Below the pieces are notes generated by a model. The model was not told where the DNA came from and searched no databases. It worked only from the letters and a program-made list of their open reading frames with translations. The translations under genes were made by a program, and so were the position numbers. This document shows positions 8,933 to 54,334 of a stretch of 64,000 nucleotides of DNA, in pieces. The stretch is from Anthoceros angustus (Eukaryota; Plantae; Anthocerotophyta): the NCBI GenBank assembly GCA_010909165.1, contig MU008195.1, positions 310,001-374,000 of the forward strand, given 5' to 3'. How positions within the stretch are numbered: the first letter of the stretch is position 1; the number at the start of each line of letters is the position of its first letter.

Positions 8933-11900
8933 TCATTTTCTGGACATAAAAGACTCCTTCAGCTGTGTGCCCAAATCTTTTAACGTCGTATACAGTACTT
9001 CTTTCTGTTCATGCCTGTGGTCTCCAACAAGAAATGTATGCTTCTCCTGTCCATGCTCAATCCAGCTCTGGCCAGGCTTCTTCCAGGCATCTCCACTCTG
9101 TCTCAACTGATCTATTTCGTCCGCAGACTCCAGCATGCCAGCATCAGCATAGATATTTGACATGAGCACATAAGCAGCAGAATGCTTGGGATTCAAGCCA
9201 ACTGCTGCATCAAATGCCCTTCTCCCAAGTCTCACATTACCATGCTTTTGGCAGGCACCTAGCAGGCATAACCACACAGGAAGGTCAGGCTGCATTGGCA
9301 TTTGCGATAACATGTCTTCTGCCTCGCTAAAAAGACCTGCGCGGCCAAGAAGATCAATAACACAAGCATAATGCTCCAACTCTGGAGAAATGCCATGATC
9401 CCGGGTCATGCTTTCAAAGTGCTTCAGTCCGTCATCTACCATGCCTGCATGACTGCACGCAGACAGGATTGCCACAAACGTGACTCTATTTGGTTCTATG
9501 CCTGCTAGACACATGTCGTTGTAGCACTCCATAGTCTGCTCCAAAGCTCCCATTCGAGCATACCCAGCAATTAGTGCAGTCCATACGACCACATCATGCT
9601 GAGGCAGTGAGTCAAATACACGCTGAGCCTGTCCCATGCTGCCACATTTACCATAGGCATGGATGAGACTGCTTGCCACTGCTGGACTACACTCCAATCC
9701 AGTCTCAATAACATGCTGGTGAACTCGAACACAGGTATCTAAGGCCCCAGTATTGCTACAAGCTTCCAAGACGGAAACAAATGTAGACTCCTGTGGCTTC
9801 ACGCCTTCTGCCTGCATTTGGATGTACAGTTGTAGAGCCTTGTCGCCTTGATCCTGCTGAGAGTAAGCTGCGATCATGAGCGTCCACGTCACCTCATTGC
9901 GCTGGGACAATCTGTCAAATACTTGTTCAGCATCCTTGACGCTCCCACACTTTGAATACATACTAACTAAAGTGTTACCCACAAACATGTCCGTTTCAAG
10001 GTCCATGCTCACAACCTCAGCATGGATCACCTTTGCCTGTTGCAGAGACTCCACCTGGACAAACTGCCCATCCACCAGAGAACTCTTCTCCTGGTCTGCA
10101 ACCATGCCACATGCTTGGAGGGCACCTACAAACGTCCGCGCATCAGGCCTGATGCCTTGCTTTTGCATTTGCCGGTACATCGCTAAGGCGTTTCCACCTT
10201 CATGTTGGGCAGCATAGCCTGCAATTAGTGCATTCCATGATACTACAGTGCGCTGGGACAATGCATCAAACACCTGACGTGCCTCTGTGATGCTTCCACA
10301 CTTTGAATACAGGCTAACCAAACTGTTGTTAAAGAAGACGTCTCCATCAGAACCAGTCCCAATAGCTCTTGCATGTATCTGCTTACCCTTGTGCAGGGTT
10401 ACTACCTTGAGGTTTCGCCCAAGCACCATGACACTGTCCTCCTTCTCTGCAATGGCACCACATGCTTGAAGGGCGCTCACGAAGGTCCTAGTATCTGGCC
10501 TCACCTTTGCTTCTACCATCTGTTCAAAAATCTGCAAGGCCCTTTCTCCTTGGTCCTGCTGGGCGTAGGCTGCAATCATTGCATTCCAGGACACTACATT
10601 GCGCTCCACCAGACTATCAAACACCTTTTGCGCATCCACAATGCTCCCACACTTTGCATACATACTTACCAGAGTGTTAGCAACAAAGACATTTGATCCA
10701 AAACCCCCTTGAATAGCTTCAGCATGTATCTTCTTGCCCTGCTCCAGCGTCTTCTCCTTCACCATTTGACCACCTACAAGTAAGCTTTTCTCCAGTTCGG
10801 ACAGGGTCCCACATGCTTGAAGAACAGCTACGTAAGTCCGTGCATCTGCCCTCACTTCCTCCACTTGCATTTTCTGAAAAATCTGCAAGGCCTTGTCTCC
10901 TTGGCCCTGTTGAGCATAAGCCGCAATTATTGCATTCCAAGACACAAGATTCCGTTTAGGCAGGGTATCAAAAGCCCTCTGAGCATCCACCATGCTCCCA
11001 CACTTCGCGTACATGCTGACCAAAGTGCTCCCAACAAAAACGTCTGACTCAAGCCCAAGGTTAGCAGCGTCAGCATGAATTCGTCTGGCCTCCACCGGGT
11101 CCTTTAACCTGCTGCATGCTTTGAGTAAGCTGACAAATGTGTAGTTGTTGGGCTGAACACCTTCCTGTTGCATCTGTTCATAGCATGAGAGAGCCTCCCG
11201 ACATTGTCCAGCGTTGCTATAGCCTGAGATGATGGCTGTCCAAGAGAAGGCATCGCGTCGAGACAAGCGTTGAAAAACTGGAAGTGCATCTTTAAGGCTT
11301 CCACAATTCACCAATGTTATGACCAGAAGGTCGCCCAACACGCTGTTCGACTCCAATCCATGTTTTGCAATGTGTGAGTATACTAGCTTGGCGCTGGCAA
11401 GGGCTTTCTCCTTCAAACATGCCTGCAACAGGTGCTGATACATCTGTACCGAAGGAACACTCCCCTGCACATCCAATTGCTTCAGAATGCCCAGTGCCTC
11501 ATATAGCCGTCCCTGCTTGCATAAACTCTCCACCTCCCATGAGTCCCTAGGGCTAACAGGCGTCCTGCAATAGCAGAATTCCAAACTCACAATTGCACTA
11601 ATTCTCCTTCTCACATAAATCCCAGCACTTGTTGCAGGCTTGTGGAACAATATTCAGAACAGCACAGTACCTCTCGTTGGCAGTCCACGGAGACATACTC
11701 ATCCCAGTCTGCAGCCGAGAATTCACCGTCACCGGAGCTGGCTTCCGTATGCAGTTCAACCATAGCCTAGATTCAAGTGTCTTCTGCCTGGAAGGCCTCT
11801 TCTGCAGGCATTGTAAAGGCCACTGTCAGGGTCCTCATAAGAACGACAGGATTGCTTATCAATCACTCCCAACGTCAGCCCCAGTGAGCATCAAAACAAC

Positions 11901-12237
11901 TCTCGTGGGGCAGCAAGCATCAATCCGAACATGCCTTATTCAGACTACTCTGCCACCATTGAGCAGGATCTGAAAACGAGCTGTACCCCCTTAGACCCAG
12001 CTGATTCTTGGGTGTAACTAGCGCCTTGCGATGGTTCACTAGAAGCCCCCTGGAAGCCGGAGGTGCCATGTCCAGCCCTCCTGCTTTTAGCTTCCCTGGA
12101 GGCCAACTGGAGGATGCAAATCGGTCCAGAGCCCAGAACAGTTCCGTTGACACCATGCTGTTGCTGTTCTGCAAGAGCAGAGAATTCGAGAGCATGCTGC
12201 TGAAACCCATGGACGCGGCAGCGTGAGAATGGAACAT
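8933..12237 (-). CDS. PLS-class PPR protein (PPR-1), E/E+ end with PG box and no DYW deaminase; complement(join(8933..11564,11671..11822,11935..12237))
   Basis: ORF 8933..11650 has repeated P-L-S triplets (LVSMYAKCGS...VVSWNAMIAAY), E motifs and KKPGQSWIE, then stops with no HxE/CxxC. Upstream exons were inferred from splice sites that keep frame (phase-2 GT-AG at 11565..11670; phase-0 GC-AG at 11823..11934). The 5' model is less certain than the body. Confidence 0.88.
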
Positions 12238-12505
12238 ATGTTTGCCCTTCACAGTTGCATCCGATTCCTGCTACCGGCTTGATGGGAGGTCGACACGCAG
12301 AGCACATTACAGTTGGCAGCTTTGCAAATTCGAATCTGTACATCAAAAAGACCACCAAAGCTAAAAGAGCTTCTCTCACCAGCCAGCTCAGAATTGCATA
12401 TCACAATTGCTGAGTTACCAACCGCAGGTGGGGCCATCCACTTTGGAGACTGCTGCTTGCTTCAAAGGCTAGGGAGGCAGAACCAATTTCATCCCTGTGT
12501 CCACG

Positions 12506-15420
12506 ATGGTCGAGGACAGGAGCTCTCGGCAGTTCCGATTCTGCATCGATAGGGGTGGGACGTTTACGGACGTGTTCGCGGAGGTCTGCGCACCCTTTAC
12601 CAGTTTTGTGTCCTTCACATATAACAACTGGACTGAGATGTTGAATGTGATTGCTTTAGTGCTCAATTTTGGGGATTTCGTGGCAGGTGCCTGGAGAACC
12701 AGGCTGGCGATTGGTGAAACTACTGTCCGTGGACCCAGCAAATTATGAAGATGCTCCACGAGAAGGAATCCGACGGATTCTGGAAGAGGTATCCTTGCAT
12801 TGTTTATCTTGTGTGCTCCTAAGATGTGGTGCAGTTGAGGTTCTAAGGTTTGCAAATTGCAGGTCACCGGAGACAAGATCCAGAGGTCAGGGAAGGTTCC
12901 TACTGACAAAATCGATTGGATTCGCATGGGTGAGATGATAACTCTCTTTTGCACCCAACATTTCTGGTAGGTGGCTGGTAAATGTGTCGCTTGTATTCTT
13001 CTGATGGGCTTCTTGCTGTCCCTGAAGGAACAACTGTGGCAACAAATGCCTTGTTGGAGAGGAAGGGTGAGCGTACAGCTCTAATGCAATCACATGAATC
13101 AGATATGAGGAAGTGATTGAAGCGGATGAACGTGTTCAACTAGCATTGGATGGAGTGCAAGTAGAAGGAGTTACTACTTTAAAGGGAGTCTCAGGCGAAT
13201 TGGTGGAGATTGTAAAGCCTCTGGATGAGAAAGCTTTAGAGGCTCAGCTCTGGGTGAGCCAGAAAGTGTCTGGTGTTAACTTCGATTGTGAAGCAGAAAT
13301 TTGAGCTTTTTTTCTTGTTCCCAACATGAGCAGGTTATCTTTGAGCTTTTTTTCTTGTTCCAACATGAGCAGGTTATCTTTCGTCCTTTCCTGATCAAGA
13401 GAAAAGATGTAAGAGGAGGTGGGCATGATGTTGTGTACAGTCCAGGAGGTGGAGAGACTGGCTATGAGTCTGGGCTTTAAGCAAGTGTCGATCTCGTCAG
13501 CTTTGGTTCCTATGATTTGAGCTGTTCCAAGGGGTCTCACAGCAACCGTGGATGCTTATCTTACCCCGGTCATCAAGGAGTATCTATCTGGCTTCCTCTC
13601 AGGTTCTTGACATGTTATGCCTGCGACTATTGGCTTCTTGAAAGAACAGAAATAAACTGTCGATCAGTCGCGTGACCAACATCTTATGTCTTTGCTTATG
13701 ATGTCAGGTTTTGATGAGGGACTTAGCAAGGTGGCCATCTCATTTATGCTGTCTGATGGAGGTCTTACCCCTGAACACAGATTTTCCAGTCATAATGTTG
13801 TGAGATATAAAGCTTGAGTTCCTTGACTTTATCCAACTTTTCTAGTTAAGGCTTGTATGGATTGATCGACACCTTTTTTGCAGGCTATTCTTTCAGGTCC
13901 TGCAGGAGGCGCAGTTGGCTACGCACAGACGACTTATTCCATCGAAACCGACCAGCCTGTACGTCTTACTTCTCAGCAATAGTCTATCTCCCTGTCTCAA
14001 GAATATCCTCATATACATGGTACTCTTCAGCTGATTGGCTTTGACATGGGAGGAACATCCATGGATGTGAGTCGGTATGCGGGGAGCTACAAGTAAGATT
14101 CATATTACTCATTTGCAGAAAATTGTTGTGGCCATCCAATTTCTTGCACAAGTCACAAACTATGTTCTTTGAATTGGAAATCACATGCAGGCTCCACAAC
14201 TTGATATCAACACAACTTGTTTAGTCCTGATGGAGGACTGGTGGCAAATGCGCCTCATGTACCAGTCCACTAGGAGCGATGTCAAGCACTGTCCGTTGGC
14301 AAATAAATTACTGGCAAGTTGTTTCTATACTACGATCCCCATCAGCTAAAATGTATAACTATGTTGTCACAGAACACAAGTCACAAGGAGGATGACTAAG
14401 TTGTAGATCTTCTTTTGCATGTTTCAGGGGTGATGATCTGAAAGAAGAAGACGTGCTTGTCACCAATCATCCCGCGTGTGGAGGGAGCCACCTTCCAGAT
14501 ATAACCGTCATCACTCCAGTATGTGACATTGCAGATCTCATCTCCAAGTGAACTTTGTTAGAATTATTTCATACTGTTTGTTGTGTAGGTGTTTGACAGA
14601 GGACAACTGATTTTTTTTGTGGCAAGTGGAGGACATCATGCAGAAATTGGGGGAATAACTCCTGGCAAGTGAGATGCAAAGTGTGTATGGGTAGATATCA
14701 CCGAAGTCCGCTATATCGGTACCGATCGTCTGAATGATACTAGATCCAGCATGCCCCCATTTTCGAAAGCAATTTGGGAGGGAGGAGCAGCCATTAAAAC
14801 GTTTAAGCTTGTTGAGGGTGGTGTCTTTCAGGTACGTGTGTGTGAATGCATTGCGTAGTGACCACTGCATATTCGAGATTAAGACATAATTCGACCACTA
14901 ACAACAGCGATGTTGGCTTGTTGTGATATTTTCAGGAGGAGAGGATTGTCCAGATCCTCCGAAAAGAGACCTATGATGACGAACAGGACGATGAGAACAG
15001 TGCCACGATACCAGGAACAAGGCGGGTAGATAACTTATCAGACCTAAGAGCTCAGGTTTGTCCCTTGGGTTTGGTTGGAGCTTCAATGAGGACGGCGGCC
15101 GGGCTGCCAGGAATAGGTTTGAGTGGATGAGGTAAACAAACGTGTTCTGCCTGCTTCATTGTGTCAGATAGTAGCCAACCAGTGGGGCAGTGTGCTTATT
15201 GGAGAACTCATTCAGACATATGGACAAGAGGTGGTGCAAGCATGCATGCATCCTGTGCAGGTGCTGTACGCGAAATGCTGAAATCCATGGCACACCATGC
15301 TACCAAGCAACACGGTATCTCTCAACAGGATGATCATGTGACGGTTCTGGAGGCTGAAGACTACATGGATGACGGCTCCACTATTCATCTTAAGCTTACC
15401 ATTGATGCTGAGAGGGGTGA
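12506..15420 (+). pseudogene. OXP1: Inverted, deleted pseudogene copy of 5-oxoprolinase
   Basis: Same 5' exons ([23 protein letters not shown]). It has a nonsense change CGA>TGA at 13518-13520 and deletions at ~13083, ~13320, ~14090, ~14214 (~2.4 kb), ~15262 and ~15421 (~1.4 kb) relative to the minus-strand copy. Confidence 0.9.
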
Positions 15421-15868
15421 GTCCATGAGAAAAGTATGTAATCAAATGTTAAATTGTATATGTGTGCACTCAATAAGGAAGTATTTTCTATCTACTCTCT
15501 CCTCAAATTGAATGGCCTTTTGCATCCATAGTCATAACGCTTGCTCCTGCCAGCAATGGCGGTCTGGAGCATTGCAAGTCATGCACGCGAAGGGCCAGAG
15601 GACGCGTCGTGGGAACAGTCTTCGTGGACACAACAGAGTGGTAGGTTCACGGGTTGTCAAGGAAGAGTACCAACTCGACTGTCTTCAAAGAAGCAAGCGC
15701 TGGAGCTCGGGAGATTCAATTTCGGGGGGTGCAGCACCTTTACGAGAAAGACATCTCCTACAATTCAACATTTGATTACATACTTTTCACATAGACTCAA
15801 CTCTTCCTGCGCATCTCCACATCGAACGCCGATGTGATGTCACCTGATCTCATAGAGCTGGACAGCGG

Positions 15869-18800
15869 CTAGGCTTGCCCCCAGCCTCCTCCGCCGGGAG
15901 TCAAAATCTGAAGGCGTTCTCCAGCTTTGACGTGCACAGTGTTCTTCCCTGCCAATACCCGCAGTCCAACAATGAGCAGCTACGGAATCCAAGAAATCAG
16001 TCTGGAGGAAAGGTGGCAGACTGGGATACCTCCTAAGTACACATGCCGGCAATCCTGCTTGAAGAGAATGTTTTGGCCCCTGGCCCCATCTTTTCCTCCA
16101 GCCAGCCCTCGGGGTGCATGTACGCGGCGTTCTGAAAGAATGGATACCTGCTCACGGAGGATGCAGCAATCAGTAACGAAAGAGGTGAAGTTTTATAAGG
16201 ATGGAGCGTTAGGAAAAATGCAAACAAGAATGCAGCCATCTGTGACAGACTGGGAAGGGCATAGGAAAGTTACAATGACTGGCTTTCGGAACTCTATCTC
16301 TCGGATGACGCCGTCGCCACCACGGTGTTTGCCTGCACCTCCACTGTCCACTCGCAGTCCAAATTTATGGAGTATAACCTGGGAGGCAGCCACGATCGAT
16401 GCTCGGTTCAGTGTTACCGAAATGCCAGGCGAGCTGAGGAGGAGAGCGAGTCTGAAATAGGATGTGCATGCTCACCGGGTATCGTTGCTCAAAGATCTCG
16501 GGATCCGTTATTCGGGTGTTGGTCATGTGACACTGGACTCCGCTGGTGCCATCCCATGTTGGTCCTGCACCACTGCCGCCAGCAATGGTCTCATAGTAGC
16601 CAAATGTCTTGTCCCCAAAGGTGAGGTTGTTCATGCAACTACATCAACATAGCGCCAGTTAGAAGAAAACGGTTTCTTTCCTGCTGCAAACAAAGAGGTG
16701 GTGGATCGTGTGTGTATACCCTTGAGAGCATGCACAGGCTTGGAAAGCAGTAAGCACGACGTCAGTAACTCTTTGTGATGTCAAAACGTTTCCGCCGACA
16801 ACAGCGGCTTTATCACTTGGGGAGAGCAGGCTGCCTTTTGGGATGTGAATGGAAACGGGAGCCAGGCATCCCTGGTTGAGGGGAATGTCCACATCCACCT
16901 GTTTTCGCCATGCCATGTTATGAACAGAACGAAGCATTCATGAGAAGCCTTAAGCTAGAGATGAAATTTCTGGGCAGTGGTGACTACTGCAGAGCTCACC
17001 AGGCAGCGGAGACAGTAGATGATAGCAGCTGCTGTGACTGCTTCTGGTGCATTCCAGTTGCCGTAAACCTGGACAACTTCATGGTTCAGTTGCCAAGGAC
17101 AGAATATGCAATCACAGAAGTAGCTATCGTGACCCTATTTGCAGAAAAGGATATGCTGTGCCTAATATGGCCATGGCAAGTATTGTACTCACCTCTGGAC
17201 TAGTGCCCTCAAAATCGAAATGCGCCTCACCCCTCTCAGCATCAATGGTAAGCTTAAGATGAATAGTGGAGCCGTCATCCATGTAGTCTTCAGCCTCCAG
17301 AACCGTCACATGATCATCCTGTTGAGAGATACCGTGTTGCTTGGTAGCATGGTGTGCCATGGATTTCAGCATTTCGCGTACAGCGGCTTCAGCATTGGCC
17401 TGCAGCAGGAGGACACTGCATGAGCTTGTATGAGTGTGCAGGTATGGCATCCAGGTTTGTTGATTATACTCACCTGCACATGATGCATGTATGCTTGCAC
17501 CACCTCTAGTCCATATGTCTGAATGAGTTCTCCAATAAGCACAATGCCCCGCTGGTTCGCTGCTACCTGACACAATGAAGCAGGCAGAATTTGGTATCTA
17601 CGTTTGTTTACCTGATCCACACAAACGTATTCCTGGCAGCCCAGCCACCGTACTCATTGAAGCTCCAACCAAACCCAAGGGACAAACCTGAGCTCTTAGG
17701 TCTGATAAGTTATCATCTACCCGCCTTGTTCCGGGTATCGTGGCACTGTTCTCATCGTCCTGTTCGTCATCATAGATCTCTTTTCGGAGGATCTGGACAA
17801 TCCTCTCCTCCTGAAAACATCACACAACAAGCCAACATCGCTGTTGTGAGTGGTCGAGTTATGTCTTCATCTCGAATATGCAGTGGTCACTACGCAATGC
17901 ATTCACACACGCGTACCTGAAAGACACCACCCTCAACAAGCTTAAACGTTTTAATGGCTGCTCCTTCCTCCCAAATTGCTTTCGAAAATGGGGGCATGCT
18001 GGATTTAATATCATTCACACGATCAGTACAGATATAGAGGACTTGGTGATCTCCACCCATACACACGTTGCATCTCACCTGCCAGGAGTTATTCCCCCAA
18101 TTTCTGCATGATGTCCTCTACTTGCCACAAAAAAAATCAGCTGTCCTCTGTCAAACACCTACACAACAAACAGTATGAAATAAGTCTAACAAAGTTCACT
18201 TGGAGATGACATCCATGCAATGGTTACAAACTAGGGAGTATTTCACATACTGGAGTGATGACGGTTATATCTGGAAGGTGGCTCCCTCCACACGCGGGAT
18301 GATTGGTGACAAGCACGTCTCCTTCTTTCAAATCATCACCCCTGAAACATACAAAAGAAGATCTGCAACTTAGTCATCCTCCTTGTCACTTGTGTTCTGT
18401 GACAACATTAGTTATACATTTTAGCTGATGGGGAGCGTAGAATAGAAACAACTTGCCAGTAATTTAGTTGCCAACGGACAGTGCTTGACATCGCTCCTAA
18501 GTGGACTGGTACATGAGGCGCATTTGCCACCAGTCCTCCATCAGGACTGAACAAGGCACAAGAAAAATCAAGGCGTTCCTGTTCCAAGTTCGTGTCAGAA
18601 TACTGGCACTTGAGCTTAAAGGTCACTTAATTCCAAATTCCATGGAGGTCTGACCTTGATGTTGGTGGAGATGGAAGTTCTCTGAAGTGTGCGTCCCATT
18701 TGTTCAGCTATACCCATAAACCGGTTGTTGAATATTGAGAGCTGTATGACATCTGCCTTCAGGTCCAATTTTCCAGACTCGAGGCCAGCAACCTGGGTGC

Positions 18801-21800
18801 CAACTTCTATGCGGATGTTTCCATGCTTGGTGATCACAGCCTTGCAACTTGGTTCCACCACTATCTGTCAGACAAGGAGAGTGCTCAAGCACGAGCACAT
18901 GTCAGCTGGGAATTTGATCGTTTTCTTGACTGAACATTGAGCGCATAAACCAGCAACTCATCACTTGCACTTACCGTGCTGTTTCCATTCATGACAACTG
19001 CTGGGCCACTCAGTTCATGACCATGCCTGAGTTTTTCCAAAATGAACACCTGACAATACGCCACAGCAAAGGTTCAATATAGTGTCCAAATCAAGGGCCG
19101 TTTCCACAACATTTGCACATGGTGTAGAAGACAGGACAGACCGGTGTGTCATGCCACCCAGTTTCAAAAAACAATCGTTGAAGCTTTGGTTCTGCAACTG
19201 GGCTATCCACAGCCTTCTCCAGAACGACTGGCCTGAGAGTATGCTCAGCTTTAGAATCAGAAAAAAAAAAACCTGCCCAGAATGGTGGAACTTGCGCACA
19301 ACTTGTTGAGAGCAGTCTGACATACAACTTGAAAGGTGAGAAAACTTACTTCAAAATGTTGGTAACTCCAACGCCATGGATTCTTACATCACTTATGAGG
19401 ATCTTCCTGTTTTGCAGTTCAAACCCGTACCTAGAAAAAGGATGGCAACGCAAGAAACTCGCTGAGGCTTGGATGACACTCTAGCAACAATAGTGGCGCT
19501 GATGAAAACAAAGAAGTCAGTTTGAGCTGTCCCGAAGATTACTTACTCTCTACGAAACTGCTTGACAAACGCTCCTGCATAATCACCATAAGAGGGAGCA
19601 CCTATCATCATCGCTGTGTCTGTACCCTGGAAGACAGTTATTCACAGAAGAAATATCATCATGGAGGGCACTTTAGGCAGTTCTACAACCACCTGCCATG
19701 GGGGATTAAGCCCAGGAGTAGAATACTACCCACCTCGTAGCGGAGATTGAGTAAGACCTCTGTGGTGATGTCCTGCTCTCTAAAGCCCTGTATCAATTGG
19801 CAAGAACCAATGGCATGCCAGTCAGTTCAGGAACCATGTGAAGCTTGCACAAAAGCAGTTCTATCCTAGTTCAACAGACCTGCAGCTGAAGCTGCTCTTT
19901 GACCCGCTTGGTTAGGCCAGCTGCACGTATTGAGACTTCAGCCAAGGCATCTTCACCATACACAGCAGCATAGGGCTCTTGAGCCTCCTCAACAACATCA
20001 GCTAGTCCCATCCCATAAGCACTTAGAACTCCACAGTATCTATGAATGACAACCTCCCCTGTGAGCAAAATGATTTCTCTTAGAAGACTTGGTGGACGTA
20101 GAGGCATTCAAATAAAAGCTGGGAGAAGAGCATACTCATGCCCAGGGCTCGGGCAATTGCACAAGCATGCTGTGGGCCTGCTCCACCAAAACATGCTAGG
20201 GTATGTTTACTGGTCTCATAACCTTTCATTTCTGTAAGCTGCAAACATGGAATGTAGCCATTATGATGCAATGCTTAAACACAAGATCACCCCATCGATA
20301 ATAAAAAGTTCGCCGAGAAGCGTGTATACCTGGCGAATGGGTCGACACATGGCCTCATTAGCTACATTCAGAAAACCAAGGGCTATCTCCTCCACAGACA
20401 TTTCCTTCACTGACCCATGAAGCGGGTTACCACCCAGGAAGAGCACCACAAACAAACGGTAAAGCTGTAGCGACTATCCTACAACTGAGTACCATGTGCA
20501 TCCTGCTCAAGGCGATATTTGTTGATCACGGCAGCTAGAGATTTGAATGCTATGCGGGTTGCTGTCACATCCAAAGGTTCGTTTTCCTGCATTGACAGGT
20601 ACTCCAAAAGTCATCCATATCACTCCAAGGATGAATATTATTTTCTATAGCAGTGACGACTTACGTGAGGACCGAAGATAGATGGAAAATATTCGGGAAT
20701 GACACGCCCAAGAACCAGATTAGCATCAGTGACAGCCAGCTCCCCTCCCTTGCGATAGCACACTGGTCCCGGATGAGCACTGACGGATTCTGGTCCCACC
20801 TGTACCGACCTCTTATCAACTTCAGGACCTCAGCCCTGCATCACATGTCCTATCACTTGCTTCCTAACACCTAGCATCGTAATACCAAAGATTTGATTAG
20901 CTGCAGGTACCCTCAGTGCTGGGCACCAAGGACCCAGTACCTTGAAGACTCCTGCCTGAAACTTCAATTTTGAGCCCCCACCCGCTGCAACTGTGTTGAT
21001 ATCAAGTTGTGGAGCCTGCATGTGATTTCCAATTCAAAGAACATAGTTTGTGACTTGTGCAAGAAATTGGATGGCCACAACAATTTTCTGAAAATGAGTA
21101 ATATGCATCTTACTTGAATGATAACACCTGCAGTTTGAGTTTCAAAGACTTGCTCGTAGCTCCCCGCATACCGACTCACATCCGTCGATGTTCCTCCCAT
21201 GTCAAAGCCAATTAGCTGAAGAGTACCATGTATGTGAGGATATTCTTGAGACAGGGAGATAGACTATTGCTGAGAAGTAAGACGTACAGGCTGGTCGGTT
21301 TCGATGGAATAAGTCGTCTGTGCGTAGCCAACTACGCCTCCTGCAGGACCTGAAAGAATAGCCTGCAAAAAAGGTGTCGATCAATCCATACAAGCCTTAA
21401 CAAGAAAAGTTGGATAAAGTCGAGGAACTCAAGCTTTATATCTCACAACCTTATGACCGGAAAATCGGTGTTCAGGAGTAAGACCTCCATCAGACTGCAT
21501 AAATGAGATGGCCACCTTGCTAAGTCCCTCGTCAAAACCTAACATCATAAGCAAAGACATAAGATGTTGGTCACGCGACATAGGATGTTGGTCACGCGAC
21601 AGTTTATTTCTGTTCTTTGAAGAAGCCAATAGTCGCAGGCATAACATGTCAAGAACCTGAGAGGAAGCCAGATAGATACTCCTTGATGACCGGGGTAAGA
21701 TAAGCATCCACGGTTGCTGTGAGACCCTTGGAACAGCTCGAATCATAGGAACCAAAGCTGATGAGATCGACACTTGCTTAAAGCCCAGACTCATAGCCAG

Positions 21801-23083
21801 TCTCTCCACCTCCTGCACTGTACACAACATCATGCCCACCTCCTCTTACATCTTTTCCCTTGATCAATTAAGGACCAAAGATAACCTGCTCATGTTGCGG
21901 ATAGATATGTGAATGCAAGAACACAACCGCAAGGCTCCGTATCCCTTTTGCCAGCAGCTCCTGTTTGGGAAAACTGTTCAGAGACAAGCTATCTGGAACA
22001 AGAAAAAAAGCTCAAATTTCAGCTTCACAATCGAAGTTAACACCAGACACGTTCTGGCTCACCCAGAGCTGAGGCTCTAAAGCTTTCTCATCCAGAGGCT
22101 TTACAATCTCCACCAATTCGCCTGAGACTCCCTTTAAAGTAGCAACTCCTTCTACCTGCACTCCATCCAATGCTAGTTGAACACGTTCATCCGCTTCAAT
22201 CACTTCCTCATATCTGATTCATGTGATTGCATTAGCACCAAAGAAGTGATTTCAGCTATCAATTTTTTTCCAATTTCTCAAATTCATTCAAGAGTGAGTT
22301 TCTGACATACAATGCTGAAGGTTTTGCGACAGTAAGATCAAAAATCTTTGGACGAGCCTGATTTCCAATGAGAAGAAGGTCTTTGAATCCCTGCCACGCG
22401 TTCCAATGAGCAGAAACAAATCAATTCAACTCACAATCTCCACCGTGAATACACCAAGGTATGAGAGGAAGAAAACTCACTTTGGTGACGCAAAGAGCTG
22501 TACGCTCACCCTTCCTCTCCAACAAGGCATTTGTGGCCACAGTCGTTCCTTCAGAGACAGCAAGATGCCCATAAAAAATACAAGCGACACATTCACCAGC
22601 CACCTACCAGACGTATTCAGACCAGAAGTGTTGGGTGCAAAAGAGAGTTATCATCTCACCCATGCGAATCCAATCGATTTTGTCAGTAGGAACCTTCCCT
22701 GACCTCGGGATCTTGTCTCCGGTGACCTGCAATTTGCAAATCTTAGAACCTCAACTGCACCACATCTTAGGAGCACACAAGATAAACAATGCAAGGATAC
22801 CTCTTCCAGAATCCGTCGGATTCCTTCTCGTGGAGCATCTTCATAATTTGCTGGGTCCACGGACAGTAGTTTCACCAATCGCCAGCCTGGTTCTCCAGGC
22901 ACCTGCAACGAAATCCCCAAAATTGAGCACTAAAGCAATCACATTCAACATCTCAGTCCAGTTGTTACATGTGAAGGACACAACACTGGTAAAGGGTGCG
23001 CAGACCTCCGCGTACACGTCCGTAAACGTCCCACCCCTATCGATGCAGAATCGGAACTGCCGAGAGCTCCTGTCCTCGACCAT
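15869..23083 (-). CDS. OXP1: 5-oxoprolinase (ATP-hydrolysing), multi-exon
   Basis: Exons encode [75 protein letters not shown]...[21 protein letters not shown]...[12 protein letters not shown] and the C-terminus [26 protein letters not shown] (TAG 15869-15871). One apparent -1 frameshift at ~21726 (ccc vs cccc in the other arm) is a likely homopolymer error. Confidence 0.95.
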
Positions 23084-23351
23084 CGTGGACACAGGGATGA
23101 AATGGGTTCTGCCTCCCTAGCCTTTGAAGCAAGCAGCAGTCTCCAAAGTGGATGGCCCCACCTGCGGTTGGTAACTCAGCAATTGTGATATGCAATTCTG
23201 AGCTAGCTGGTGAGAGAAGCTCTTTTAGCTTTGGTGGTCTTTTTGATGTACATACTCGAATTTGCAAAGCTGCCAACTGTAATGTGCTCTGCGTGTCTAC
23301 CTCCCATCAAGCCGGTAGCAGGAATCGGATGCAACTGTGAAGGGCAAACAT
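23084..23351. promoter_or_regulatory. Compact bidirectional promoter between OXP1 (-) and PPR-2 (+); duplicated at ~12238-12505
   Basis: Head-to-head ATGs only ~270 bp apart. The PPR start (23352, alternatively 23379) is inferred. Confidence 0.55.
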
Positions 23352-25980
23352 ATGTTCCATTCTCACGCTGCCGCGTCCATGGGTTTCAGCAGCATGCTCT
23401 CGAATTCTCTGCTCTTGCAGAACAGCAACAGCATGGTGTCAACGGAACTGTTCTGGGCTCTGGACCGATTTGCATCCTCCAGTTGGCCTCCAGGGAAGCT
23501 AAAAGCAGGAGGGCTGGACATGGCACCTCCGGCTTCCAGGAGGCTTCTAGTGAACCATCGCAAGGCGCTAGTTACACCCAAGAATCAGCTGGGTCTAAGG
23601 GGGTACAGCTCGTTTTCAGACCCTGCTCAATGGTGGCAGAGTAGTCTGAATAAGGCATGTTCGGAGTGATGCTTGCTGCCCCACGACAGTTGTTTTGATG
23701 CTCACTGGGGCTGACGTTGGGAGTGATTGATAAGCAATCCTGTCGCTCTTATGAGGACCCTGACAGTGGCCTTTACAATGCCTGCAGAAGAGGCCTTCCA
23801 GAGATGGATCTTCCAGGAAAATTGAGCCGACCTGCTCGTCGAAGAATTTGTCAGCTCACCATATGGGCGTAACAGTCGAAACCGTGAGCAAGCTATGCCA
23901 TGATGGGCATCTCACTGAGGCTGTTGAGGCTCTGGAATTTCTGGTGCCGTCAGACCGTTGTATTTCCAAATCTCTCCTGGCCACTTTGCTGAAGAAATGT
24001 GTAGCCAAGAAGAGTCTGGTTCTAGGTAGGCGGGTCCATGCTTGCACGGTGAAGATGAGCTACCAGTCAGATACGTTCCTGGGCTTCCACCTACTGCGAC
24101 TGTATGCTTCTCATGGCAAGTTGCAAGACGCGTTGGATGTGTTTGAAGTGGTTGCCAGACCAGATGCCTTCACATGGTCTGTCATAATTTCTGCGCATGT
24201 TAAACACATGCAGGACAAGCAGGCCATAGAACTGTATCATCGGATGTGCAGGTCCGGTGTGAAGCCAGACGGACATTTGTTTGTGGCAGTCCTTCAGGCT
24301 TGTGCAAGGGGATCAGACTTGAAAACTGGGCAGCAGGTGCATGCTGATGTGTTGGCCACTGGCGTCGAGCCTGATTTGTTCGTCTGGAATAGCTTGGTGG
24401 ACATGTATGCCAAGTGTGGGAGCTTGGATGACGCTCAGAGAGTGTTTGATGGACTTGGTCAGAAAGATGTGGTCACTTGGACTGTGATGATAGCAGCCTA
24501 TTCCCAGCAGGGCATGGGGCAGGAAGCCCTTCGTCTCTACGGTGTTATGCAGAAAGAAGAGGGCATGGCCGTGCCTAACACAGTCACATTTGTGTGCCTT
24601 CTGCAGGCATGTGCAAGTGTAGGCACGGCAGCTTTGGAGAAAGGGAAGCAACTTCATGCGCAAATTAGAAAAGGAGGACATGAGCATGATGTGTTTGTAG
24701 CCAGTAGCTTGGTGAACATGTATGCAAAGTGTGGCAGCTTGGATGACGCTCAGAGAGTGTTTGATGGACTTGGTCAGAAAAATGAGGTGACATGGACTGC
24801 CTTGATAGCAGGATATTCCCAGCAGGGCATGGTCCAGGAATCCCTGCGTCTCTACAGGGCTATGCAAGAAGAAGGCGTGGCTGTACCCAATTCTGTGACA
24901 TTTGTGTGCCTCTTGCAGGCTTGTGCTCGGGTAGGCATCCCAGCGTTGGAGCAGGGGAAGCAGCTTCATATGCAGATTAGGGCGGGAGGACATGAAGCAG
25001 ACTTGTTCGTAGCCAACAATTTGGTGAACATGTATGTGAAGTGTGGTAGCTTGGAAGACGCCCAGACAGTGTTCAATGGGCTGGGTAAGAAGAATGTGGT
25101 CACATGGACTGCCATGATAGCAGGGTATTCCCAGCAGGGCATGGGGCAGGAAGCCCTTCGTCTCTACGATGATATGCAAGCAGAAGGCCTAACTGTACCC
25201 GATTCTGTAACTTTTGTCTGCCTCCTGTATGCCTGCGCGAATGTAGCAGCTCTGTGTCTGGGGAGGCAGCTGCATGCAGAGATACGAAAGCAAGGACTTG
25301 AAGCCGATTTGTTTATAGCTGGCAGTCTAATCAACATGTATGTGAAGTCCGGGAGCATGATTGACGCACAGCAGGTGTTTGATACATCACCCAAACGGGA
25401 CATCGTGGCCTGGAGTTCACTCATTGCAGGCTACACCTACCAAGGAGAGAGTGACATGGTCTTGAACTTGGTGCAGAGAATGAGGGAGGATGGCATACAG
25501 CCAGACGGCATCACACTAGTCAGTGTCCTAACTGTATGCAGCTACGCAGGACTAGTGCAGCAGGGATGGGAGTATTTCGAGGCTATGCGCAGCCAATATG
25601 GCATCACCCCCACGGTGGAGCACTACACCTGTATGGTGGATCTCCTGGGCCGTGCGGGACAGCTAGATGAGGCACTGACTTTGGCAAGATCAATGCCTGT
25701 AACGCCCAATGCTGCAGTGTGGCACACTCTGTTGAGTGCTTGTCGAAAGTGGAGCAACGTGGAGGTGGGCCGTTGTGCTTTCAATGAAGCAGTGCAGCTG
25801 GACACGAAGGATGCCGCAGCATACGTGTTGATGTCGAACATTTACACCGATTCCCACATGTGGGAGCAGGCACAGGAGATGCAGGAGAGAAGGAAAAGAA
25901 TGAGGGCGTGGAAGGAACCAGGACAGAGCTGGTGGACAGACGTGGATGGACTGGTGCATAGCTTTTTGGCTGGTGCATAG
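23352..25980 (+). CDS. PLS-class PPR protein (PPR-2), WW-type PG box, truncated before the deaminase; join(23352..23654,23767..25980)
   Basis: ORF 23848..25980 has P-L-S triplets and E motifs, ending KEPGQSWWTDVDGLVHSFLAGA*. The frame stays open upstream to the acceptor ctgacag|TGG at 23767. The phase-0 donor AAG|GC at 23654/23655 is inferred. Confidence 0.88.
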
Positions 25981-26383: not shown

Positions 26384-29300
26384 CTAGACCAAGAGTTTCT
26401 TCTGCACGTGTTCTGAAATCGAAAGAAGGAAGTGCTCGCCAACCGACAACTCGTATGCCTGTTGGCCCTCTATAGCTACCTTGATCTGATGAGGAAACAA
26501 AGAAGAAAGGACAGATGATTAGTCAGTGAAAAACCTGAACGCCCAAATATCGTACCCAGAGGTCGACACCAAGAAGTAGTGGTACCAGAACATACCTTGT
26601 TTTGGTTGACAGCCAACTCTGTTTTTAGGTTAGCCAAATCTCTGGAAAGGAGGTAAATTTCTACATTTTCTGCATGCTGTGCTTGCCCTGAGCATAATTG
26701 AATGACGGCATCCTTGGCAAAAGAGAGGGTGGCTCTAGACAGGGTGACCTCCAAGGTGCCTCCACCAACTCCTTTGAATACCTCGCTGTCAATAACCACC
26801 TACAGCCAACCATAATCACAGGTTAAGAGAGACAATGTAACGAACGACAACAGCATATCCTGCAAGAGTGAGATACATAGAACAAGGTCTGTTCCAGCTG
26901 GAGCCGTACCGCATGGCCAGGAAGTAACGTCAAAGGAAGCAGTGGAGATCCCAAGGAGTCCTTGATGTAGGCAGCCTGACACAAGAAGGAAGAGACCAGC
27001 ATAGTGAGATTCGGTGTCTGTTTATGTGATACTTGAAACTGAGTCTGCTCACACAGCTGCGTCTATTCATTATGCATCGCCCTACCTGAGTTTCGATAAC
27101 GTGGCTAAGACAACTCTTTTCACTTGTAGGAGGATCATCTTCCAGTACTTTGTACCACACCTCAATACTATCTGTGGGCTCTAGCCCAGCTTTCTTTCTG
27201 AGCTTCTGAACCCTGTTGACAATCTGGTCCAGAACAAGCAGACAGTAAGTGAACTGCAATAAGCCAAACATGCGGCTGCTGCAACCCAACCCAGGCTGAA
27301 AGGGTGAGCAGCTTACTTCTCTTGCAAATCCAGCTTCAATCAGACTTTCATCAGGTTGTAGGTCCAACACAACCAAAACATCACCTGCACACGTAATGAG
27401 TGAGGAAAGCAAGGGCGAATACACATGCTTAATCCTAGCAACCCTTGGGTCATGCTTTGTGTAGAGAATGTGTAGAGAAGTGCTGACATACATACCATCT
27501 CCAGCAGCATCAACGTCCTCTTTCCTAACCCCATCAGGAGGACGGAAGTCTCTGATAACCTGGAGCACAGGCAACAGATTACATTCACGCATTCCACAAA
27601 CAACGTAGAACAGAATCTAACACGACATGTTGCATTCTGAACCTTGATATCTCCTCCAGTGAGCTTGTGCCCAGCAAACGTAGCCTCCCCGGACTTCTCA
27701 AAGGCGAGGATGTCAGACTGAGTCATGCTTTTCACCTCCTTTGCCACTAACCCCATGGCTTTACCCAGTCTTTTACCAAGCACACTGCTCCCAAAAGGTT
27801 TTCAAAGGTTAGAATTTTGTCGACTTGCATGCCAATCTCAAAAACATAAAACCAGGAGCTGAGCATTTACCTGAAATCTGGTTCTGCTCGAAGATTAGCA
27901 TATGTAAGTGGATCATTGCAAGATTTGATGGTTCTGACATTCAGCTCTTCGGATACATACTGCAAGTCAAATTTTGCCAACAATGCAATATTGGCTTGGT
28001 CATTATGACGCAGAAGCATCATGATGCTTACAAGCAGCACAAGGTGCCTCAAGTGGCCCTACCTCGCCAAGTTTTCCAGTGATGTCTTCAAGAAAGTCGG
28101 TGTCGGGATGCACAATAACCATTTCTCTGGCAGACACAAAGTACTAAAGTAAGATCCTTCTTCCAGTGCCCACACAAAACACACAAGTATCATTTCACAG
28201 CATCAAGCCCAACCTCAGAGGCGTCTTCAAGGGCTTGTTATGCCGCTCTCTGATGATCCTGGCCAGCTCAATGACCCTCATCATTCTTCCCACACTCTCT
28301 TCAATTCTGTGATCACTCTGGCAAGAGCAGATAGACCACATCCATTAGTCGACAAATGACATACCAACGTCCTTCTCTGTAAAACCGGCTTCCACACGAA
28401 ACAGTACCTTTCCTTGCACTTCTGGAAAACTGCAGAAGTGCACACTTTCTTCGGCTGAAGGCCCTAGAGGTCTGCGAAGATTCTGATACAGCACCTCGGA
28501 GAAGAAAGGCGTGAAAGGCGACATTGCTTTGGAAGTAGTCAGAAGCACCTGACACACATGATGCGAAGGTATGAGCAGAGACTACATGCAAATTACAGCA
28601 GCCTCTAGCAAAATACTACCAGTAAATGGAAGGGAGTGCATACATGATACAGGGTAGACAGAGCAACTCTGCTATCTGCTTCCCCAGTGCGGCCTTTTAG
28701 TCTCTTGCGATTGAAGCGTACATACACATTTGTCAAGCTCTCAATGAACTTCAAAAGCTGTGGGACAACCTGCATTGAGGAAGATCTGCTATAAATACCT
28801 TTGCATGATTGGTACACTGATGTGTCATCCTTCAATTCGCAATGTAGAACGGTGGAAATAGGAAAGCTTACTGTATACAGTCTGAAGGCTTCCATCTCCT
28901 CTCGCACAAACCCAACAAGACTCTGACAGGCAGAATTGATCCATCTGTCCAAAACATTGGTGGACTTCTGCAGAGTGGGCAGATCTAGTGGCTGGAAGGT
29001 GCCAAGACCTTCGACTTCAAGGCGCAGTGCATTTTGAACTAAAAATCTGTACGCATTGTACCAGGGGAGGAAGACATCCTTGACCTACAGGCACAGTTCA
29101 ATAGATTTGTACCTCACACTCGTTTCACGATCTTAGAAAATGAGAGCATAAGTACAAACACGCCAGATTCAGACTAACCACAGCAAAAACTCCATCCTTC
29201 TTGAATCTTAGAGGTTCTGCTCGCACAACTGGTGAGTTGATGAGATACAATCTCAGAGCATCCTGCAAAACCAGAATTGTCACGACTGTGTGCATATGCA

Positions 29301-40584: not shown

Positions 40585-41705
40585 AAAGCGTTGCTGCAAT
40601 TTGTGATGCCACAAGTTGCGAACACAAGACGCTGAAGAGTGAAATGCTGAAGTGATTCAACTGTTAAGCCCTCTCACAAACCGCAAAATCATGAGGTTTC
40701 TGGTGTCAGCTAGAGCGAAAGACTATGCTTCTGTGTTCATCATGGCGGCCAAGCCAACTCCGATGAACTATGCTTTTGCATCATCCACCAGCCGCTTAGA
40801 CTAGCAGTCAGAAAGGAAAAGAAAAAGTTACTCACACATGTCAGGCGACGATATCGTAGAGGCCTCTCGGATGTATGAAGCCTAAAAACTTCATACGCCA
40901 GAACACAAGTTACCAGCAGCAATAGATACCATGAATGACGCTGGCACCTGCAACCGAGTCTGAATGCAGACCTTCTGCGCTGGAAAAGCATGTTGCGTTC
41001 CGTCATTCATCATCTGCCACCAACACAAACAGTGACGACTCAACCGTTACCTACATCTATATGTGCCAAACCGGTTACCTTCACCCATTTACAGAGAATT
41101 AAGGTGAAGATCTGGCAGCCCGTACAACACACCACAAATTGCCAAACAGCACCCACCAAGACCTACTCCAAAAATGTGTTGACCTTTAATTGCTGGCTAC
41201 ATTGCGCAATTCTGTGATAAAACACCATTCAGCACTGAGGGAACAAAAGGAGCTTGATGCCACTCCCATCCCTAACAAATTGTCACTGCACCATGTTAGA
41301 CACCTTCCGTCAGCAACCGATATCACTCAAGTAGCCTCAGCTGCACGACAGGCAGCGACAGCTCCTTCACTTAGAAGATTGTGTCATTCTCTTAATAGCT
41401 CGCATACGTTGTGCCTCAACATTAGCTGCCACCTTCGTACGTGATAGACAACTACCAACACAGAGATGCTAATCCCTAAAAGGTTGGCGAGACAACCGAG
41501 ATCTTGGTCGTCAATCATCTGCGTATGACCAAGCAATCAACAAAAACCACCACAAACATACACACAACCGACCCCGAAGGACCCTCGCACTCTGAAGAAC
41601 ATCAACCCATCCAGACCTCACCACCATGAAACCGCCAGGCGACAGGCAGAGGGCCTGCAAAGAAGAAGAAGAAGAATTATCAGAAGTAAGCTACAGATCA
41701 GATCT
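40585..41705. repeat. Diverged ~1.1-kb block repeated at ~46107-47185 (and ~53000-54120, ~58520-59605)
   Basis: Shared runs such as caagttgcgaacacaagacgctgaa, gactatgcttctgtgttcatcatggcggccaagcc and gacagctccttcacttagaa. Confidence 0.8.
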
Positions 41706-41851: not shown

Positions 41852-41924
41852 TCCGTTGTAGTCTAGACGGTTAGGATACTCGGCTCTCACCCGAGCGACC
41901 CGGGTTCGAGTCCCGGCAACGGAA
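41852..41924 (+). tRNA. tRNA-Glu (anticodon CTC)
   Basis: Acceptor stem TCCGTTG/CAACGGA, anticodon arm CTCGG-CT-CTC-AC-CCGAG, T-arm CCGGG-TTCGAGT-CCCGG, and a CAA just upstream. Confidence 0.95.
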
Positions 41925-54263: not shown

Positions 54264-54334
54264 TCCGTTGTAGTCTAGACGGTTAGATACTCGGCTCTCA
54301 CCGAGCGACCCGGGTTCGAGTCCCGGCAACGGAA
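54264..54334 (+). tRNA. tRNA-Glu(CTC), duplicate copy with two 1-nt deletions (probably sequencing errors)
   Basis: Same as 41852..41924 except ttagatac and ctcaccgag. Confidence 0.8.

Follow-up and report, generated by a model that had tools for sequence, protein, structure and literature searches.

A candidate for leader capture between two PPR genes through an inverted duplication in Anthoceros angustus

An inverted duplication in the 64,000-nt stretch of DNA analysed here (the window) has set a copy of an intergenic region, a leader exon with the intron behind it and 35 nt of the following exon in front of the body of a PPR gene (PPR-L), the copied segment having very probably been taken from the 5' end of a different PPR gene on the right (PPR-R). 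We hold this structure and the right-to-left direction of copying to be well founded, and with the same high confidence, covering structure and direction jointly, we regard PPR-R, the leader and an ancient phase-0 intron as the ancestral pairing. In kind (segmental duplication, exon shuffling) the locus is nothing out of the ordinary, and its reading depends on a single predicted gene model; judged from its sequence it is a textbook-style candidate for leader capture. The features are listed in Table 1.

Table 1. Positions of the arms, junctions and gene parts in the window (a slash within letters marks an exon boundary).
Feature	Positions	Strand	Remarks
PPR-L body	8933..11564	-	intact 876-codon PLS array; E motif, PG-box remnant (KPGQSWIE...), no DYW domain
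Left intron 2 (proposed), 106 nt	11565..11670	-	ag/gtactg ... ctattgcag/g
Left chimeric exon 2	11671..11822	-	35 nt copied (11822-11788) plus 117 nt of PPR-L upstream sequence, joined in frame at 11788/11787
Left arm (copy)	11788..15421		decayed OXP1 5' part plus copied promoter region, leader exon 1, intron 1 and 35 nt of exon 2
Left intron 1 copy	11823..11934	-	3 substitutions relative to the right copy
Left leader exon 1 copy	11935..12237	-	Gly/Arg difference at 12048, synonymous difference at 11968
Single-copy spacer, 1804 nt, between arms	15422..17225		OXP1 3' exons and 3' flank
Templated inverted insertion, 37 nt	15422..15458		copy of 15759-15795 (OXP1 3' flank), 34/37 identical
Intact OXP1, multi-exon	15869..23092	-	spans the whole right arm into the spacer; stop codon 15871-15869
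Right arm (template)	17226..23801
Head-to-head intergenic region, OXP1 (-) / right leader (+)	23093..23351
Right (ancestral) leader exon 1, 101 codons	23352..23654	+	Ser-rich presequence and first half of a degenerate PDF-type domain (SFSDPAQWWQSSLNK)
Right intron 1 (proposed), 112 nt, GC-AG, phase 0	23655..23766	+	aag/gcatgt ... ctgacag/tgg
PPR-R exon 2 and body	23767..25980	+	PLS array, E motif, ends soon past EPGQSWWTD, no DYW domain
Outer breakpoint, template side	23801..23802		then agatggat-cttccag

Inverted repeat pairs in the window tile 11788-15421 against 17226-23801, and the outermost pair (11788-12968/22621-23801) is 1181 nt long, ungapped and 99% complementary. It had been claimed in an earlier note on this DNA that identity between the arms ends inside PPR exon 2 and that the right junction carries a repeated cttccag. 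When both junctions were read, identity was found to stop exactly at 11788 on the minus strand and 23801 on the plus strand, inside a short exon and after ...ccttccag, with the repeat present past 23801; neither the junctions nor the arm alignment gave any residual similarity past these breakpoints. What follows on each side is a different PLS PPR body, as had been described, the two sharing 36-41% identity. Aligned, the arms show 124 substitutions and 18 indels. Mismatches amount to 1.4% in the outer 1181 nt by the leader versus about 4.7% in the remainder, and none of the indels falls in 11788-12968 while all 18 lie in the other 2.45 kb (P about 0.001 if evenly spread). Over the innermost 159 nt the arms are 100% identical, a sign that gene conversion may have acted between them. 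Judged by its divergence of 1.4-4.7%, the duplication is young. Left-arm deletions make up 15 of the 18 indel events and include some with loss of OXP1 exons, one of them 2435 nt long; many of them could stem from copying errors during the duplication itself.

On the left, the frame is open all the way from 11822 to the donor at 11671, crossing 11788/11787 and followed by GT at 11670, and the other two frames contain stops; the 106-nt GT-AG interval then joins the 8933-11650 ORF through ...KPGQSWIE, in agreement with the gene model proposed earlier. The right frame is likewise open, from the tgg at 23767 to 25980, through ...EPGQSWWTD. The PPR-L body frame is closed by a TGA at 11656-11654 and contains no ATG ahead of the one within the first PPR repeat; a complete start for PPR-L therefore needs the intron 2 splice. 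Both bodies have Pfam matches to PPR_2, PPR, PPR_1 and PPR_3 (E values 1e-38 to 1e-104) and to the E motif PF20431 (4e-12 in PPR-L and 1e-13 in PPR-R). The DYW deaminase PF14432 has no Pfam match in either, and no downstream ORF continues the domain. The PLS repeats, E motif, PG-box remnant and cut before the deaminase core of the E+ PLS PPR class are common to both bodies, and by this domain content PPR-L and PPR-R are E/E+ subclass PLS PPR proteins that stop shortly past the PG box. As to the proposal that a PPR body acquired a ready-made promoter and leader from a neighbour, the copy does stand in frame before a different body; transcription, splicing, organelle import and function of the fusion are not part of that observation, and we infer them from the sequence. 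That the left gene is a functional chimera seems to us slightly short of an even chance; in its favour are the in-frame junction, the intact 876-codon body and the lack of indels in the 1181 nt beside the leader.

The duplication may instead be real and the left fusion a dead by-product, PPR-L having lost its promoter and start at the break, gaining no productive splice to the copied leader and being a young pseudogene that awaits a disabling mutation. We regard this as a serious contender, if on the unlikely side. At such low divergence few substitutions are expected in PPR-L, and because the duplication is young the intact ORF is weak evidence of constraint against substitutions. An in-frame junction is a one-in-three chance, exon 1 has a GC donor, the OXP1 part copied alongside is plainly decaying, and gene conversion, as over the 159 identical nt, could account for the low divergence near the leader. 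Against this, the 2.6 kb of PPR-L contain no frameshift versus the 18 indels of the adjacent 2.45 kb of arm, the fusion frame is the sole open frame across 11787-11671, and the splice signals of intron 2 are good and its phase fits.

The direction of copying was assessed from OXP1 (5-oxoprolinase) and from the inner junction. Hydant_A_N (PF05378), Hydantoinase_A (PF01968) and Hydantoinase_B (PF02538) follow one another in this order along the minus strand between 23092 and about 16200; OXP1 exons scored singly fall below the whole-protein cut-off, with the exception of the Hydantoinase_B pieces. The N-terminal ORF begins at 23092, has its first ATG at 23083 (-) and carries the Hydant_A_N match, and the C-terminal exons and stop are read in spacer sequence. 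The OXP1 fragment of the left arm, on the plus strand from about 12497, is truncated and bears the 15 deletions, so the decay reported for it is borne out. At the inner junction, the small inverted repeat formed by the 37-nt insertion and its source (15422-15458/15759-15795) starts precisely at the end of the large arm, with a TGAG microhomology at the template switch. The earlier note held that the donor copy could not be told from the window; this view has to be given up. The right copy is ancestral, because OXP1 is intact only via the right arm and spacer, because left-arm deletions predominate among the indels between the arms, because the inner junction carries a templated inverted insertion as in fold-back repair, and because a PDF-relic N-terminus is found on relatives of PPR-R and is absent on relatives of PPR-L (see below). 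The same junctions bear on an assembly artefact, that is, a chimeric join at 11787/11788 or 15421/15422 with the left arm brought in from elsewhere. Inverted repeats mis-join easily, but the substitutions and indels between the arms indicate two distinct loci and not one read twice, a microhomology and a templated insertion are found at the inner junction as in a biological fold-back, and the open frame continues over the outer junction; we consider such an artefact improbable.

Under the fold-back explanation that we prefer, a double-strand break between PPR-L and the OXP1 3' end would have been repaired by fold-back synthesis. The OXP1-side end would first have made an inverted copy of 37 nt from its own 3' flank; synthesis would then have switched at the TGAG to 17226 inside OXP1 and copied about 6.6 kb outward, comprising the OXP1 5' two-thirds, the ~270-nt intergenic region, PPR-R exon 1, intron 1 and 35 nt of exon 2. 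With the new end joined to the PPR-L side at 11787, PPR-L would have exchanged its own 5' end for copies of the promoter region and the leader, set in frame. The head-to-head region between OXP1 and the right leader is a candidate bidirectional promoter, copies of which would likely drive both genes at present, with splicing as modelled in the earlier note; the outcome would be two different E+ PPR proteins nearly identical over the first 113 or so residues. We give the whole explanation, a functional left chimera included, an even chance. Fold-back (hairpin-primed) inverted duplications are known from human constitutional rearrangements and from yeast (PMC3907307; PMC7467729). Their single-copy spacers measure 766 bp to 70 kb, the inverted microhomologies span 2-8 bp, and some of the junctions contain inserted sequence (PMC3907307). 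The present locus resembles them in its inverted arms round a single-copy spacer, in the microhomology and inserted sequence at the spacer junction and in the joining of the copy to another broken end. Unlike the human and yeast fold-backs, the copy here is about 6.6 kb long, interstitial, fixed in a plant genome and already diverged to the extent given above, and its far end landed inside a gene to give an in-frame fusion.

When families of PPR editing factors expand to hundreds of members, promoters and import signals have to be gained or retained all along, and the PPR family is hugely expanded in this lineage. PPR expansion is mostly explained by whole-gene duplication or retroposition. 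This locus points to a different, readable route, in which a second PPR body receives in frame, by way of a fold-back copy made in break repair, the promoter and presequence of a neighbour together with a conserved intron. We propose, tentatively and at rather less than even probability, that PPR-L, from a subfamily that normally has unrelated presequences of its own, now works on a captured bidirectional promoter and a presequence/PDF-relic leader acquired via fold-back repair. If true, this would be a dated, mechanistically resolved N-terminal module swap between editing-type PPR genes in which the donor, the recipient, both junctions and the decaying OXP1 passenger are all still legible, and the destination organelle of PPR-L could have changed. 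An expressed fusion would be a clean natural capture of leader and promoter with the donor next door, and a natural experiment on the PDF-relic leader as a targeting determinant; if not expressed, it would exemplify a rearrangement that decapitates a gene. Since donor and recipient are both PPR genes, the recipient probably had a leader already, and the event would be a replacement and not a first acquisition. The presequence of plant cytochrome c1 is a leader acquired by exon shuffling or duplication (Long et al., 1996, as cited in PMC7456531), and in that case, as the citing source relates it, a 5' leader exon separated by an intron from the body likewise moved before another coding region. 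Unlike the cytochrome c1 case in that account, here the promoter was copied too, and both the donor copy and the mechanism can still be recognized.

The right leader ORF has its first ATG at 23352. As had been noted, the 101-codon first exon is open in both arms with one residue of difference (ASRG/ASRR), to which we add one synonymous site; the left-copy alleles are G at 12048 and T at 11968. No further leader copies were found elsewhere in the window, and no whole-leader relatives among 1.84e9 proteins in collections without this species' own proteins. The leader had been described as a targeting leader. Its N-terminus is indeed presequence-like, but the leader is not a presequence alone, ending in a degenerate PDF half-domain. 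We take this domain to be probably OSB-type on the basis of the published motif description. For the OSB PDF motif we follow its description in PMC6963530. The first half-domain (W..FFSDPxQWWDNRxxK) is present in the leader, which matched alignment A1, made of Diphasiastrum, Sphagnum and Calypogeia PDF-PPR proteins, with an hhalign probability of 77% (E 2e-5, columns 9-23, ending at the invariant K). Exon 2 had no match to A1 for the second half (PDFKHK...LW...NPPW), and a PDF[KR] motif is absent near the leader in all frames. As in the PDF-domain PPR genes of seedless plants, an FSDPxQWW core lies upstream of a PLS array and is followed by a phase-0 intron after the invariant Lys; unlike the full PDF-PPR genes, the window leader keeps just the first half, and the P-D-F half is missing from exon 2. 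The exon ends read ...WWDNRSEK/gtaaac in Calypogeia (L005), ...WWDHRSEK/gtaagt in Sphagnum (L006) and ...WWQSSLNK/gcatgt in the window.

The donor proposed for exon 1 is GC rather than GT, which speaks against the splice model, but it sits exactly where PDF-PPR genes of a liverwort and a moss share a phase-0 intron, a finding that supports the model; leader-body splicing as modelled is what we infer from it. Also against the model, an alternative in-frame GT-AG intron (23665/23666 to 23816/23817) exists in the right copy alone, and the left-intron substitution at 11923 abolishes the GT present solely on the right. The leader ORF might otherwise lie outside both PPR genes, as an upstream ORF or small gene, with PPR-R starting from the ATG at 23862 and PPR-L untranslated or starting from the ATG at 11703. 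PPR genes are often without introns (e.g., Sphagnum P0097) and a second ORF of 144 codons overlaps the leader in a different frame. We nevertheless find this quite improbable: the PDF half-domain is homologous to the N-terminus of P0036, a PPR-R homologue, in the same place and orientation, the leader breaks off precisely at the conserved intron position, and without it either PPR would have at most about 10-20 residues before the first repeat.

P0036 is the closest PPR-R homologue, with 61% identity and collinearity at the DNA level with 24017-25949. Its N-terminus is PDF-type (hhalign probability 97.6%) and matches the window leader; the pairwise match is weak (E 2e-5) and in the right place. 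A second paralogue, in the same run as P0036, has a degenerate PDF-type N-terminus upstream. The best PPR-L homologues, from another species, are 48-53% identical and have N-termini of their own (70-100 aa) without the PDF relic. Judged from these homologues, the PDF half-domain belongs to the subfamily of PPR-R. That the two genes are old inverted paralogues with leaders always related, homogenized in their 5' parts up to a sharp boundary by recent gene conversion, is very improbable: palindrome arms do undergo conversion and identity is uneven along the arms, but a left arm in which the OXP1 copy is cut short at a templated insertion is no conversion tract, the N-termini of the nearest PPR-L relatives are unrelated, and similarity ceases at the breakpoints. 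PPR-R itself is an SWWTD variant, which it shares with P0036, P0102 and P0080.

A repeat scan of 7000-28000 returned 15 inverted pairs that tile the left arm against the right arm, and the same layout was reproduced by BLAST and MAFFT of both arms (positions of all features are collected in the table). The outermost pair, 11788-12968 against 22621-23801, spans 1181 nt with no gaps and is 99% complementary. When the sequence was read directly at both junctions, arm identity was seen to break off after ...ccttccag, at 11788 on the minus strand and 23801 on the plus strand, inside the PPR exon where the earlier note had placed it; the right side reads on as agatggat-cttccag, which is the repeated cttccag described there. 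The leader, a 101-codon first exon running from the ATG at 23352 (right) or 12237 (left) to the proposed donor, has no stop in either arm, as claimed, and the single residue said to separate the copies proved to be one of two differences: Gly to Arg at 12048/23541 and a synonymous change at 11968/23621. Downstream, the frame of the right PPR gene (PPR-R) is free of stops, while that of the left gene (PPR-L) reads through the breakpoint without a stop between 11822 and a GT at 11670; an interval of 106 nt, whose GT-AG signals are good, links it to an ORF at 8933-11650. Each body is an array of PLS-class PPR repeats with an E motif recognized by Pfam, and the two share only 36-41% identity, in keeping with the claim of two clearly different bodies in the same frame. 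A DYW domain is absent from both bodies by Pfam, and no DYW-like ORF was found downstream of either. The two are E+ type PLS PPR proteins, and they would be called editing factors by family membership only. The duplication is confirmed in its arms, frames and two bodies; each exon was searched separately, and the frames were checked by script. In the PPR-L/PPR-R alignment, three L-type repeats of PPR-L carry extra segments of ~14-16 residues (e.g. ...LSELEKSLLVGGQMVKEK...) opposite gaps in PPR-R.

Features of the inverted duplication, its surroundings and related loci
Feature	Position	Strand	Remark
Left arm	11788-15421
Right arm	17226-23801
Single-copy spacer	15422-17225
PPR-L body	8933-11564	-
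PPR-R exon 2 and body	23767-25980	+	frame stop-free throughout
Leader (exon 1), right	23352-23654	+
Leader (exon 1), left	11935-12237	-
Proposed intron 1, right	23655-23766	+
Proposed intron 1, left	11823-11934	-
OXP1 (5-oxoprolinase gene)	15869-23092	-
Extra L-repeat segments of PPR-L	~10735-10810, 10400-10470, 10040-10115	-	PPR-L/PPR-R alignment
tRNA genes in tandem duplication	41852-41924, 54264-54334
snoRNA snR60/Z15 copies in tandem duplication	40698-40793, 46203-46299, 53115-53211
Split PDF-type domain	L005:1605-1821 (liverwort), L006:1126-1360 (moss)		first half alone on 27-codon exon

The leader could be placed through relatives of the two bodies. The protein collections searched with PPR-L and PPR-R, which did not include proteins of the species itself, gave matches of at most 61% identity. 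The best relative of PPR-R (P0036, 61%) is encoded on a Logan contig that runs collinear with 24017-25949, and its N-terminus ...FLWYEFFSDPTQWWDSRRN matches the leader end YSSFSDPAQWWQSSLN. A well-conserved N-terminal domain of 52 residues, with the consensus LWxEFFSDPSQWWDNRxxKKNPKxPDFKHKxTxExLW...NPPWV, is borne by 22 of the 220 proteins from the two PPR searches (Diphasiastrum, Sphagnum, and Calypogeia; alignment A1). Its features agree with those published for the OSB "PDF motif", which has ~50 residues with a Pro-Asp-Phe signature and binds ssDNA (PMC6963530). Against the A1 profile P0036 scored with a probability of 97.6% (E 4e-12); the leader matched columns 9-23 only, up to the invariant Lys (probability 77%, E 2e-5), and exon 2 gave no match. 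Because of this partial match, the leader is read as a presequence followed by one half, the first, of a degenerate PDF domain. Pfam, which holds no model for the PDF motif, assigned no family to the leader or to the PDF-bearing N-termini; a 92-residue leader query run by phmmer on 1.84e9 representatives met no whole-leader relative at E<=1e-3, and within the window there is no further copy beyond the two arms. In a second paralogue, P0080 (locus L004, same run as P0036), a degenerate PDF-type copy occupies a separate ORF upstream. The PDF motif is missing from the best matches to PPR-L (48-53% identity), whose N-termini are contiguous and 70-100 residues long. The presence of the PDF relic on PPR-R relatives and its absence from PPR-L homologues argue that the leader belongs to the subfamily of PPR-R. 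That SWWTD-type E+ PPR subfamily includes PPR-R and, in one related species, three paralogues (L001, L003, and L004 of Logan run SRR33208241), of which the first type has a contiguous PDF-type N-terminus, another a degenerate PDF-type copy in its own ORF upstream, and the last no such copy within 1.1 kb upstream. In L001, 1.4 kb of sequence precedes the PPR-R homologue and shows no OXP1, but it is too short to inform on synteny. A second long ORF of 144 codons (23210-23644, plus strand; 11945-12379, minus strand) lies in another frame than the 110-codon leader ORF, and was treated as non-coding because the PDF-type match falls in the 110-codon frame.

The PDF-type domain also bears on splicing. 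In annotated PPR genes of Calypogeia fissa (L005) and Sphagnum jensenii (L006) it is cut by a phase-0 GT-AG intron right after ...QWWD(N/H)RSEK. The leader ORF breaks off at this very residue, which argues that this is an old, conserved intron position; the split exon layout, common to liverwort and moss, is ancient. The intron is absent at this position in Sphagnum P0097 and in loci L001 and L004, and its presence is therefore not universal in the family. The junction 23654>23767 predicted in the earlier note thus has its donor at the conserved intron position, but the donor is GC (aag|gcatgt), not GT; apart from this T-to-C change the site is a good match to the donor consensus. Listing all in-frame donor/acceptor pairs gave too many combinations to be informative by itself, among them only one credible GT-AG alternative, 23665|23666 to 23816|23817, in the right copy only. 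A single T/G difference in intron 1 (11923/23666) creates this GT on the right and leaves TT at the matching position on the left, so the two copies may not splice alike. A TGA at 11656-11654 shuts the PPR-L body frame, in which the first ATG falls within the first PPR repeat. Since no start for a complete protein is available upstream in that frame, the left gene would need a second intron. The proposed model is a GC-AG intron 1 in both genes and an intron 2 in the left gene.

The earlier note had held that the donor copy could not be told from the window, and here the analysis departs from it: the donor is the right copy, for four reasons. The remainder of OXP1 is continuous with the right arm alone, decay is one-sided (left arm), the inner junction is informative, and the homologues place the leader in the subfamily of PPR-R. 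Minus-strand exon-sized ORFs from 23092 to ~16200 match Hydant_A_N, Hydantoinase_A, and Hydantoinase_B in order, and the final exons and stop codon (15871-15869) lie inside the single-copy spacer, which makes OXP1 a single uninterrupted gene across the right arm and spacer, head-to-head with the leader and with start codons ~270 nt apart. The left arm is a truncated plus-strand copy of the OXP1 5' two-thirds. Fifteen of 18 indel events between the arms are left-arm deletions (2435, 260, 87, and 40 nt among them), several beginning within OXP1 exons, and the other three are of 1-2 nt each; the decay reported for the co-duplicated OXP1 part is thus borne out. The gaps are not precise intron removals (the 87-nt gap takes 16 exon bases, others begin inside exons), which marks the copy as genomic rather than a retrocopy. 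The truncated copy (12497-15421, plus strand) faces the 3' end of the real OXP1 (15869-17225, minus strand) and retains a copy of the predicted bidirectional promoter region; read-through from it would yield RNA antisense to OXP1, or a hairpin.

At the inner junction, the left arm ends at 15421 and is followed directly by 37 nt (15422-15458) that repeat 15759-15795 of the OXP1 3' flank in inverted orientation (34/37), with TGAG common to both sides at the switch point. A MITE was rejected for the small inverted repeat 15413-15458/15759-15804, as the real repeat begins exactly at the arm end and has no target-site duplication. Fold-back inverted duplications have a non-duplicated spacer of 766 bp to 70 kb (median 3.4 kb; PMC3907307; see also PMC7467729), 2-8 bp of inverted microhomology and, at some junctions, inserted sequence (PMC3907307). 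The inner junction shares this anatomy of spacer, microhomology, and insertion, and the mechanism is a fold-back inverted duplication. In the simplest history, the DNA would have broken between PPR-L and the 3' end of OXP1. The OXP1-side end would have folded back, copied 37 nt and re-primed at 17226; outward copying to 23801 would then have been followed by joining to the PPR-L side at 11787. The sequence once between PPR-L and 15459 would have been lost, probably with PPR-L's own start and promoter.

That the left chimera is functional we hold only tentatively. In favor, the copied part is joined in frame to the PPR-L side and no other frame is open across 11787-11671, the PPR-L body is intact at 876 codons, and the 1181 nt beside the leader have no indels and 1.4% mismatches, against all 18 indel events and ~4.7% mismatches in the other 2.45 kb of the arm (a 0 vs 18 split has a chance of ~0.001 if indels fall evenly). 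Divergence in the outer block is 0.66% in exon 1 vs 2.7% in intron 1, small numbers without significance. Against function, the duplication is young, so intactness says little on substitutions, and error-prone copying could have produced many deletions at formation. That the left fusion is a dead by-product of the duplication we consider somewhat less likely than a functional chimera. In their innermost 159 nt the arms have 100% identity, suggesting gene conversion between them; this could equally account for the clean outer block, which also contains OXP1 pseudo-exons.

As to the claim that a promoter and leader were captured from a neighbor, copying from the right copy and the in-frame join stand, and the capture itself is a candidate case only. 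It resembles the way in which targeting sequences have arisen by exon shuffling (Long et al., 1996, as cited in PMC7456531). PMC5080715 is no precedent for chimeric PPR genes, since it uses "chimeric" for mitochondrial CMS ORFs. The structure of the locus is neat and can be read with unusual clarity, yet it is one locus only. Just downstream of PPR-R, an ORF at 26930-27592 (minus strand) probably belongs to a neighboring gene as one of its exons; its DUF5915 match is weak (E 3e-5, under the Pfam cut-off). Farther along, 38000-64000 is a tandem duplication of near-identical copies that repeat every ~12.4 kb and are not rDNA; 300-nt probes within it are 100% identical at spacings of 12407-12423.
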